Below, piece after piece: positions 862-34,870 of a stretch of 64,000 nt of DNA. Source of the stretch: Scyliorhinus canicula (lineage: Eukaryota); contig NC_052163.1 in the NCBI RefSeq assembly GCF_902713615.1, forward strand, positions 33,490,248-33,554,247. The letters run 5' to 3'. A program made the translations under genes and the position numbers. Position 1 is the stretch's first letter; every line of letters starts with the position of its first letter. The notes below the pieces were generated by a model that saw only the letters and a program-made list of their open reading frames with translations, made no database searches and was not told where the DNA came from.

Positions 862-983
862 ACTATATGTATGTTTCTGGAACATACCTCTTCATTCACC
901 TGAGGAAGGAGCAGTGCTCCGAAAGCTAGTGTTTGAAACAAACCTGTTGGACTTTAACCTGGTGTTGTAAGACTTCTTACTGT
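862..983 (+). mobile_element. Penelope-like element terminal (pLTR) fragment
   Basis: Nearly identical to the arms of the element at 32777-33694; contains a hammerhead core. Confidence 0.8.
897..931 (+). ncRNA. Minimal hammerhead ribozyme motif (Penelope pLTR type)
   Basis: CAC-CTGAGGA-A-GGAGC(agt)GCTCC-GAAA-GCTA-GTG: CUGANGA box, 5-bp stem II, GAAA box, palindromic AGCT stem III, short CAC/GTG stem I. Confidence 0.65.
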
Positions 984-31846: not shown

Positions 31847-32111
31847 TTATGGTGATTCAATGCCATCTTTCTGTGGAGATCTTGAATAAATTGGGGTTCT
31901 AGACCTGGATTTCGACTTCGAACCGTGAGACATCCGAGATCCACTTCTAGACCTCGATCTTGACCGAGACTTTGATTTAGACTTTGATCTCTCAACAGAT
32001 CTAGATTTTGATGGGGATCTAGATCGAGAATATGATCGAGACCGGGACCGACTGTAGCGAGATCTTGATCTAGTTCGGCTTCTTGTACGAGATCGACGTC
32101 GTCTTCTAGGA
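31847..32111 (-). CDS. SRSF2: SRSF2 coding exon 2 (RS domain)
   Basis: Acceptor CTCTTAG|T; [27 protein letters not shown]...ESP*; phase-2 join matches exon 1. Confidence 0.96.
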
Positions 32112-32828
32112 CTAAGAGGAAAGGATAGTTTTAGTGAGACAAAACTCAGTAAAAGTGTATGAAATACCACTGGTAAGTCAGCATAAAGCTACTGTTTTGC
32201 ATATTTCGCATCCCTGGAACTGCTTCTGCAGCTAAAAGTGTTTCACAGGCAACAGTCACCCTGAACTGTCATTTTTATCTTGCATATGTGGTTCACGGGT
32301 ATTGGTACAAAATGGAACTATGGGCAACGCAAGTGAAGACGAACCACCAACTAAAAATCCACCTCTGTGCAGTTTCCAACAACCCCTGTAAATTATCAGC
32401 AGTATTTCCAACCTGACTTCTGCTGAGCTCATGAAACATGTCATACAGATTTCCACCTAGTTTTCATTCAAACTATTAAATGCAACTTTCAACTGCCAGG
32501 CATCATTTCTCCTAAAACAGCAAAATATAAACACTCAATCATCATGTCCCACACGGCACTAAGCAAGAGCTGAAATGGTCCAGAAGCAAACCAACCCAAC
32601 GAAGAGGGACTTGCACAGATTGAAGCAGTACATTGTTCTAAAGAGAGACACGATTTTTCCATTAAAAATTTTCACAGAACCAGATACACAAGACTGCACT
32701 AAAACACAAAAGACATACTTCAGAAAATGTCCATAAATTCATGATCTGGAGATGCCAGCGTTGGACTGGGGTGAGCACAGTAAGAAGTCTTACAACACCA
32801 GGTTAAAGTCCCACATGTTTGTTTTAAA

Positions 32829-32863
32829 CACTAGCTTTCGGAGCACTGCTCCTTCCTCAGGTG
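32829..32863 (-). ncRNA. Minimal hammerhead ribozyme motif, sense to SRSF2 pre-mRNA
   Basis: Core identical to 897-931: CAC-CTGAGGA-A-GGAGCAGTGCTCC-GAAA-GCTA-GTG. Confidence 0.65.
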
Positions 32864-33381
32864 AATGAAGAGGTAGGTTCCAGAAACATATATATAGACA
32901 AATTCAAAGATGCCAGACAATGCTTAGAATGCGAGCATTTGCAGGTAATTGAATCTTTACAGATCCAGAGATGGGGGTAACCCCAGGTTAAAGAGGTGTG
33001 AATTGTCTCAAGCCAGGACAGTTGGTGAGATTTCGCAAGCCCAGGCCAGATGGTGGGGGATGAATGTAATGCGACATGAATCCCAGGTTCCGGTTGAGGC
33101 CGTACTCATGTGTGCGGAACTTGACTATAAGTTGCTGCTCAGCCATTCTGCGTTGTCACGCGTCCTGAAGACCGCCTTGGAGAATGCTTACCCGGAGATC
33201 AGAGGCTGAATGCCCTTGACTGCTGAAGTGCTCCCCGACTGGAAGGGAACATTCCTGCCTGGTGATTGTCGTGGGATGTCCGTTCATTCGTTGTTGCAGC
33301 GTGGTTTCGTGTGGTACTGGGGTTACCCCCATCTCTGGATCTGTAAAGATTCAATTACCTGCAAATGCTCACATTCTAGGC

Positions 33382-33567
33382 ATGAAATGAAATGAAAATC
33401 GCTTATTGTCACGAGTAGGCTTCAATGAAGTTACTGTGAAAAGCCCCTAGTCGTCACATTCCGGCACCTGTTCGGGGAGGCTGGTACGGGAAATGAACCA
33501 TGTTGCTGGCCTGCCTTGGTCTGCTTTAAAAGCCAGCGATTTAGCCCAGTGTGCTAAACCAGCCCCT
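33382..33567 (-). mobile_element. Short tRNA-derived SINE with (CATTT)n tail, nested in the Penelope arm
   Basis: GGGGCTGGTTTAGCACAC...CAGTAACTTCATTGAAGCCTACTCGTGACAATAAGCGATTTTCATTTCA; same family at 40082, 58227 and 59030. Confidence 0.85.
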
Positions 33568-34514
33568 GTGTGGCATCTTTGAATTTGTCTATATATATAT
33601 GTTTCTGGAACATACCTCGTCATTCACCTGAGGAAGCTAGTGTTTGAAACAAACATGTTGGACTTTAACCTGGTGTTGTAAGACTTCTTACTGTCCATAA
33701 ATTCAATTTGCCTTCGAAAAGCAATCCTGATTATTGCATAAATAAATTTGTTAATGGTCAGGCTAAATTTCTGGAAATTCTAAACAATAGACCAAGAAAG
33801 GTGCCACCTGCCCAAACACTTCTTTCCAAATGTTGTCACAACTAAACCACGAAGAAACAAAATAAAAATCGTATTTTAACCGCAGAACCCAAAGTACACT
33901 GTTCGCCCTCAGTACAAGTGATGCTACATAATCCTTTGCGGCCAGGCTCAGTGAGCTCGTCCTTATCACAAAAAACTGCAACAAAAGAGTCAACTTTTAA
34001 TAACCGTCTGGAGCCTGTGAAAACAGAGCCTCCTCCTTCAGTGCAATATCTATTAGCTGGTACTACAAAGATAAACGGTTAAAATGAAAACATATCTACT
34101 GGAGAAAGGGGGGAATCTATCACCACTTAAAACAAACCCATATTAGCCAAGGAGAAAATCTCAGCAGGTCTGGCAGCATCTGTAGGGAGAGAAAAGAGCT
34201 AACGTTTCGAATACAGATGACCCGTTGTCAAAATTGACTAGCCTTTTGATTTGAAGTTAAATCTAACTAATTGTCTCTTATAGGCAAATTCATACGGCGA
34301 GGATTGGCTGAATCTGAAGCCTGCTCCCCTCAGCCTGAAGCAAACACTGACCAGCCCCAGCCTTACAGCTATCGTTAGACATGTCAAACAAAAAGTTTGA
34401 GGAGTGAAGGCCGATTTCGGAGTTTTAAAAAAATGTATTTAGTCCATCGCAGGAGCTTCGGGAGGGCGAAAGGAGGCCGTCAATCCAACCCCCGACAATC
34501 CCTCCTTCACTGAC

Positions 34515-34870
34515 CTGCGGCTGCTCCTCCGCCCGTAAGCGCCGCCGTACCGGCGGGACGAGCCTCCTCTCCGGTGGGACTCTGCCGGCCGGCCGTAGCG
34601 CGCCATCTGCACCCTCAGCTCCCGGCCGTCCAGCACCGCGCCGTCCATGGCGTCGATGGCATCCTCGGCGTCCCGCTTGTCGTGGAAGCGGACGAAGGCG
34701 AAGCCGCGGCTCTCCCGGGTGAAGCGGTCCCGCGGGATGTAGACGTCGCCCACTTTGCCATACTTTTCGAACACGCGCTTCAGCGTCTCGGGCGACGTGC
34801 GGTAGGTCAGGTTGTCCACCTTCAGCGAAGTCATCCCCTCGATGTCGGGCGGCATTCGACCGTAACTCAT
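34515..34870 (-). CDS. SRSF2: SRSF2 coding exon 1 (RRM)
   Basis: [71 protein letters not shown]...QMARYGRP; donor AG|GTCAG at 34514. Confidence 0.98.

Follow-up and report, generated by a model that had tools for sequence, protein, structure and literature searches.

Penelope-like elements (PLEs) are known to carry an inverted, 5′-truncated copy beside the main copy, and a tail of 30–40 bp that is often found at one end only (Craig et al. 2021, PMC8557442). A PLE enzyme has been shown to cut as well as extend both strands of the DNA, and its reverse transcriptase (RT) initiates at two internal sites, the interval between them being the tail (Frangieh et al. 2024, PMC11167929). Metazoan PLEs also carry minimal hammerhead ribozymes (min-HHRs), which are inactive as single copies and only weakly active as dimers even at high Mg2+ (PMC4209133); pairs of them on opposite strands, 100–700 bp apart, were reported in 2014 (Cervera & de la Pena, PMC4209133). 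The one PLE hammerhead examined together with its protein depended on it, and public RNA-seq data had no ends at the cut site (PMC11167929). Here we describe a PLE insertion in an intron of SRSF2 in Scyliorhinus canicula, within a window of 64,000 nucleotides (RefSeq assembly GCF_902713615.1, contig NC_052163.1, positions 33,490,248 to 33,554,247, forward strand; positions below are those of the window). Positions 32742–33691 are a single insertion, flanked by a target-site duplication (TSD) and lying in sense orientation in the SRSF2 intron. It consists of two 5′-truncated PLE ends joined head to head, one of which retains a hammerhead motif on the transcribed strand, and is very likely an inert fossil of one PLE insertion event.

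The insertion is bounded on both sides by an exact direct repeat of 14 nt (TGTCCATAAATTCA); we give the TSD as 11–14 bp because its first three nucleotides (TGT) could equally be the end of the element. The segment 32777–32986 is the reverse complement of 33317–33383 plus 33567–33691, with 183 of 190 aligned bases identical (96.3%). A TA run also differs by a 2-nt indel between the arms, and the right arm alone has a gap of 17 nt and a nested repeat of 183 nt. What is missing at the gap, which lies within an AAG microhomology, is the hammerhead's stem II together with its GAAA box. A third family copy, at 866–983, retains these 17 nt, so that the gap is a derived deletion, and the converse, an insertion of 17 nt into the left arm, was ruled out by the same copy. 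The deleted segment is a quasi-palindrome flanked by AAG repeats, and slippage across such a hairpin would suffice to explain its loss. The nested repeat, which resembles a short interspersed element (SINE), was inserted after the PLE arms. It is present in very high copy and was the most abundant sequence in the RNA runs described below, with a word depth of up to ~1e6 in the contig set X15. Its 3′ end is (ATTTC)n-like, and no tRNA was found within 33384–33566 by ARAGORN or Rfam. All features are listed in Table 1.

Table 1. Coordinates of the insertion, its parts and the host gene (window positions).
Feature	Position	Strand	Basis or remark
SRSF2 exon 1 (first coding exon)	34870-34515	-	ORF start at 34870; encodes RRM
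Host intron	32112..34514	-	GT..AG, 2,403 nt, between SRSF2 coding exons
TSD, left copy	32728..32741	.	exact 14-nt direct repeat TGTCCATAAATTCA
TSD, right copy	33692..33705	.	exact 14-nt direct repeat TGTCCATAAATTCA
PLE tail, 35 nt	32742..32776	-	3′ end of long copy; absent from inverted copy and from copy 866-983
Long PLE copy, 3′ non-coding end (left arm)	32777..32986	-	inverted repeats; sense with SRSF2
Minimal type I hammerhead motif	32829..32863	-	read from sequence; descriptor match; in long copy
Private helix I substitution	32825	-	A here; G in right arm, copy 866-983 and virtually all family reads
PLE ORF C-terminal remnant (GIY-YIG endonuclease end)	32988..33316	-	translation and phmmer
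Short inverted PLE copy, inner part	33317..33383	+ (PLE sense)	pairs with 32920-32986 at 97%
Nested SINE-like repeat, 183 nt	33384..33566	-	gap in arm alignment; interrupts right arm; sense with SRSF2
Short inverted PLE copy, outer part	33567..33691	+	tailless; stops at the internal end of the family (..CTTACTGT)
17-nt deletion site (stem II and GAAA box)	33634..33636	+	within AAG microhomology; arm alignment
Solitary PLE family fragment, 118 nt, 3′-terminal	866-983	+	identical hammerhead motif; no tail

Between the arms, the remnant of a PLE open reading frame (ORF) occupies one frame with a single internal stop (33156–33158) and ends at its natural stop (32988–32990). A phmmer search with the first piece of this remnant returned 49 protein matches (best E 8e-17). 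Two of the longer matched proteins (P0037 and P0045) contain RVT_1 followed by GIY-YIG, with the remnant aligning at the C-terminus, and another matched protein (P0012) contains RVT_1. Pfam was blank on the two ORF pieces alone, and the identity was taken from phmmer instead. The order RVT_1 then GIY-YIG is what defines canonical (EN+) PLEs, the RT part being absent here because of 5′ truncation. As the remnant lies on the minus strand, this is the sense strand of the PLE, and it is also the strand of SRSF2. The long copy thus comprises the final 575 nt of the PLE, and the right arm is a shorter 3′-terminal copy in opposite orientation. The right arm and the solitary fragment 866–983 terminate at an identical internal base and have no tail. 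The C-terminal GIY-YIG end of the ORF, the TSD-flanked inverted pair of 5′-truncated copies and the one-sided tail, an optional feature, are those of a canonical EN+ PLE insertion, and agree with the first-pass annotation, which had proposed a TSD-bounded Penelope-like insertion with inverted pLTRs.

The genome of this shark has an extreme abundance of the family, of which the SRSF2 insertion is an ordinary copy. The final ~80 nt of the PLE at 32744–32826, i.e., the tail and the part downstream of the hammerhead, was 3–4 times as abundant in the RNA contigs as the bin with the hammerhead and 7–30 times as abundant as the ORF bins. This excess suggests many very short 3′-terminal copies, or else a non-autonomous relative with the same end. 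The solitary fragment 866–983 adjoins, or lies inside, another repeat (1–865).

The location in SRSF2 is the sole special feature of the insertion. SRSF2 lies on the minus strand of the window, and its two coding exons flank the intron that carries the PLE. The exon 1 product matched the solved SRSF2 RRM (2lea) with an E value of 1.1e-58, the next match being SRp46 (4e-43). At the donor side the SRSF2 coding sequence leaves exon 1 at 34515 and is followed by GTCAGT, and at the acceptor side a polypyrimidine tract and AG precede coding sequence that runs from 32111 into the RS domain. The name intron 1 is used by homology with human SRSF2, and an upstream non-coding exon is possible. The insertion contributes 964 nt to the intron; the donor is ~0.8 kb away from it and the acceptor 0.6 kb. 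The same intron holds a further short high-copy repeat (34155–34237; X15 depth ~65,000), on which hundreds of RNA reads have conserved loose ends behind 34210.

The left arm carries a complete minimal type I hammerhead core in SRSF2-sense orientation, as had been noted at first pass, the direct reading of the sequence and a descriptor search being in agreement. The minus strand from 32863 to 32829 reads CAC, CUGAGGA, A, GGAGC-AGU-GCUCC, GAA, AGCU, A17 (32832) and GUG, and cleavage is predicted at 32832|32831. A 5-bp stem II is capped by an AGU loop, and helix I is CAC/GUG. Four emergent features have been listed for min-HHRs (PMC4209133): a bulged base between 9 and 10.1, a G10.1-C11.1 pair and a palindromic 15.2–16.2, which all lay outside the search descriptor, and the existence of consensus families. 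All four are present here, among them an unpaired A (32853) between 9 and 10.1, the pair G 32852-C 32840, and the palindrome AGCU at 32836–32833 with no further helix III. A strict min-HHR descriptor written for this analysis matched two sites in the window, each within a copy of this PLE family, and none in 300 dinucleotide shuffles. Since an identical 30-mer occurs at 900–929 in the third copy, the hammerhead is a trait of the family. The first-pass annotation had also suggested a search with the hammerhead covariance models: with cmscan at E ≤ 10, neither 3.5 kb of sequence nor a 141-nt slice matched any Rfam hammerhead family (type I, HH9, HH10, II or III), the matches returned being at chance level and to unrelated families. 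The lack of a hammerhead match is expected because the motif is without helix III.

One base of helix I is private to the SRSF2 copy, which also has a private base at 32812. The family reads over 32825 have T>C in 18 of 18, 31 of 31, 80 of 80 and 63 of 64 cases, and the A found here on the minus strand breaks the 1.7–2.7 G-C pair of the helix I extension. Helix I of this copy has three contiguous base pairs (CAC/GUG), a U-U/U-U internal loop and an extension interrupted by A 32825.

The consequences for folding were assessed with equilibrium predictions on naked RNA. In the isolated 61-nt motif of the SRSF2 copy, the hammerhead-like fold has a predicted energy of -7.6 kcal/mol, 6.5 worse than the minimum free energy (MFE) fold at -14.1 kcal/mol, and the pair that closes helix I has a probability of 0.001. 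The corresponding values for the motif of copy 866–983 are -14.0 and -15.0 kcal/mol, with a helix I probability of 0.60. For a dimer of two SRSF2-copy molecules, the double-hammerhead fold is predicted at -17.7 kcal/mol versus -39.8 kcal/mol for the best dimer. The monomer cannot form helix III because a single A-U pair would close a loop of 2 nt, and there is no second hammerhead in cis because the facing copy is antisense and core-deleted.

The whole insert is predicted to fold as one long hairpin (-460.5 kcal/mol, z = -24.5), in which duplex runs of 32–67 bp have 96–97% complementarity. In its ensemble, C3–G8, 15.2–17 and both strands of helix I pair with the right arm (P 0.997–1.0), while stem II forms a local hairpin that bulges out and G12–A14 are unpaired. 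With the core and helix I paired in this manner and stem II alone bulging, the catalytic core would be sequestered. The inverted right arm is also transcribed first in the SRSF2 pre-mRNA, ~0.8 kb ahead of the hammerhead. Given the missing helix III and cis partner, the weakened helix I, a complementary arm that is made first and the favoured hairpin, the hammerhead in the SRSF2 intron is probably not a working ribozyme.

These predictions bear on several proposals made at first pass. The arm alignment agreed that the right arm lacks 17 nt with stem II and the GAAA box between AAG repeats, and the predicted bulging of stem II from the fold-back was borne out in the modelled ensemble. The proposed self-cleavage site relevant to SRSF2 found no support, given a helix I probability of 0.001, a core predicted to be sequestered at P of at least 0.997 and no dimer partner in cis, together with the low published dimer activity (PMC4209133), the published protein dependence (PMC11167929) and normal splicing. 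The accompanying statement that PLE hammerheads cleave efficiently only as dimers overstates the published activity of min-HHRs (PMC4209133).

Reads were placed on 32080–34545 from two raw oligo-dT poly(A) RNA runs (X20 and X21), the RNA contig set X15 and one run of a second species (X12). The SRSF2 exon-exon joint 32111^34515 was recovered in two raw X20 reads and in an X15 contig at a depth of 340; because it holds this spliced joint, X15 contains RNA. Among the joints listed, none led from the SRSF2 exons into the insert. In the unique part of the intron X20 and X21 had zero depth, and X12 likewise had none. X15 had a word depth of ~8.8 there versus 224–340 at the exon and joint contigs, i.e., unspliced RNA at ~3% of exon depth, so that the unspliced SRSF2 intron is present in X15 but minor. 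Thousands of X20 and X21 reads fell on the element and the nested repeat, on both strands; 84–86% of them continue into unlike sequence, so they derive from other copies and are uninformative for cleavage or editing at the SRSF2 locus. No pile of read ends was seen at 32832/32831, where the reads come from other family copies.

The X15 contigs also bear on the junctions of the insertion. One of them (32084–32773) extends 32 nt into the element and bridges the left junction under a 31-nt bridging rule. Another (33675–34182) reaches 17 nt into the element, below that rule for the right junction. In the unique intron the contigs differ from the reference at 32563, 33729, 33774, 34426 and 34494, which indicates that at least the left junction is present in an animal other than the assembled one.

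From this anatomy and the published in-vitro behaviour of the PLE enzyme, we infer how the insertion may have arisen. The PLE endonuclease would have cut both DNA strands, and both ends would have primed reverse transcription at the 3′ end of PLE RNA. The first cDNA would have begun at the outer start site, hence keeping the 35-nt tail, and extended 575 nt into the endonuclease coding region; the second would have begun at the internal start site, hence without a tail, and extended ~209 nt. Head-to-head joining of the two would have given the inverted arms within a TSD of 11–14 bp. Later, the short copy received the SINE-like repeat and lost 17 nt in what looks like a typical slippage deletion, and the long copy acquired the stop codon in its ORF together with several point changes, including the one in its hammerhead's helix I. 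The hammerhead is that of the PLE family, inherited rather than evolved for SRSF2, and in this copy it most likely does not cut. The net effect on the host would be an intron 40% longer that contains an interrupted RNA duplex of ~190 bp, which may be edited by ADAR, and that is spliced out normally.

Long inverted termini flanked by a direct repeat look like a fold-back element, i.e., a DNA transposon or miniature inverted-repeat transposable element (MITE) with terminal inverted repeats, or like a palindrome produced in assembly. We rejected these origins, which are hardly conceivable for an insertion whose interior has, on one strand, coding sequence for the end of an RT/GIY-YIG protein, whose arms are unequal 3′-terminal copies with a tail on one side only, and whose family includes a third, non-inverted copy that stops at the same base. 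Independent X15 contigs with their own single-nucleotide polymorphisms also cross the borders between flank and insert, the left one bridged and the right one by 17 nt only. A PLE being accepted, its hammerhead might still cut a fraction of the SRSF2 pre-mRNA co-transcriptionally, as a dimer with a PLE transcript or with the help of the PLE protein, and thereby lower SRSF2 output. The abundance of the family in RNA would provide partner RNAs and possibly the protein, which can assist hammerhead cleavage in vitro (PMC11167929). We nevertheless regard such cleavage as very unlikely, since the predicted helix I and the pairing of the core with the upstream arm leave little room for it, the helix III of a dimer would have just 4 bp, there is no partner in cis, and normal splicing, the lack of an end pile at 32832 and the low published activity of min-HHRs (PMC4209133) all argue against it. 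The fold-back could instead act as regulatory double-stranded RNA (dsRNA), either as an ADAR substrate or by altering splicing kinetics or intron retention, and so affect SRSF2 dosage. Long intronic inverted repeats are typical ADAR substrates, and the fold-back predicted here is stable, with long and nearly fully complementary duplex runs. Against a regulatory role stand the normal exon-exon joint, the small unspliced fraction in X15, the lack of exon-insert joints among those listed and the resemblance of the insertion to neutral debris (nested repeat, deletion, stop codon); editing could, moreover, occur without consequence. We thus consider an effect of the dsRNA on SRSF2 dosage very improbable.

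Several points weigh against regarding the insertion as an inert fossil. The conserved core of the hammerhead is intact on the transcribed strand (C3-U4-G5-A6-N7-G8-A9, G12-A13-A14, A15.1-U16.1 and H17; 32860–32832, minus). The repeat is covered only by RNA reads from other copies, and neither raw run covers the unique intron. The hairpin could be opened by helicases or hnRNPs, through co-transcriptional kinetics, or by PLE protein that active family members supply in trans. One of the two positions flagged in X20 as places where molecules begin is 33640 on the plus strand (5 molecules, beside a depth of 17), which in right-arm coordinates is the base directly after the predicted cut (G1.1); the reads must stem from other copies. 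Family transcripts might be cleaved in vivo, or some genomic copies might begin at the cut. X21 has no such flag at this position, and the library is possibly reverse-stranded, which would argue against a sense-strand cleavage product. That, in cells with an active PLE family, PLE protein or family transcripts open the hairpin and assist low-level cleavage of SRSF2 pre-mRNA, or that the fold-back with its bulged stem II is a heavily edited dsRNA which tunes removal of the intron, appears extremely unlikely to us.

If the ribozyme did cut SRSF2 pre-mRNA, transposon activity would be newly linked to the dosage of a splicing factor, and nothing found points there. If the hairpin were opened, or its dsRNA edited, with effect, retroelement activity and the dosage of a master splicing factor would likewise be linked. 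The evidence gathered contains no link between the element and SRSF2 expression, the RNA runs being uninformative for cleavage or editing at this locus. Of little importance as a locus, the inert PLE copy favoured here is of interest as a clean natural record of the PLE insertion mechanism, in which the use of two RT start sites, and of both DNA ends as primers, can be seen within one insertion. It also illustrates that an intact ribozyme core on the sense strand of a gene is not equivalent to a working ribozyme; in prediction, the context, a complementary arm that is made earlier, and one change in helix I suffice to disable it.

Among described systems, the conserved intronic hammerheads HH9 and HH10 of amniotes (de la Pena & Garcia-Robles 2010; Garcia-Robles et al. 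2012; cited in PMC7761336) likewise place a sense motif in an intron of a protein-coding gene, where cleavage could compete with splicing. They are canonical ribozymes that have a stable helix III as well as loop-loop contacts and are deeply conserved, whereas the SRSF2 copy is a young, decaying repeat that lacks helix III and has no Rfam match. The stable helix III and monomer activity that distinguish domesticated intronic hammerheads are not expected of the SRSF2 copy from its sequence and the folding predictions. Animal non-LTR retrozymes (Cervera & de la Pena 2020, PMC7229834; Li et al. 2026, bioRxiv 10.64898/2026.07.22.740005) are also PLE-related non-coding sequences that bear hammerheads. 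They differ in consisting of direct tandem repeats with at least two hammerheads and in being able to release circular RNA, while the insertion in SRSF2 has a single intact motif facing an inverted, core-deleted copy. An intronic position in itself is common among such elements, ~43% of Xenopus retrozyme copies being intronic with modest depletion only (bioRxiv 10.64898/2026.07.22.740005).

The motif is closest to the metazoan PLE min-HHRs (Cervera & de la Pena 2014, PMC4209133; Lunse et al. 2017, as cited in PMC6765202). It shares with them the type I arrangement, the CUGANGA, GAAA and UH boxes, the bulged base between 9 and 10.1, the G10.1-C11.1 pair, a short and poorly defined helix I, and the palindromic AGCU without further helix III, which implies dimer dependence. 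It differs from the examples described there in a stem II of 5 bp rather than 6–8, in a helix I of 3 bp with an interrupted extension, and in a facing copy that lacks stem II and the GAAA box. The insertion as a whole has no essential difference from vertebrate EN+ PLEs (Poseidon/Neptune-type), with which it shares the GIY-YIG end of the ORF, 5′ truncation, an adjacent inverted copy, a 35-nt tail at one end, a TSD and a sense hammerhead motif within the non-coding terminus; the copy in SRSF2 keeps the final 575 nt alone, without the RT. In structure it is a textbook PLE insertion and in motif a textbook PLE min-HHR, i.e., of an already known kind and most likely inert.

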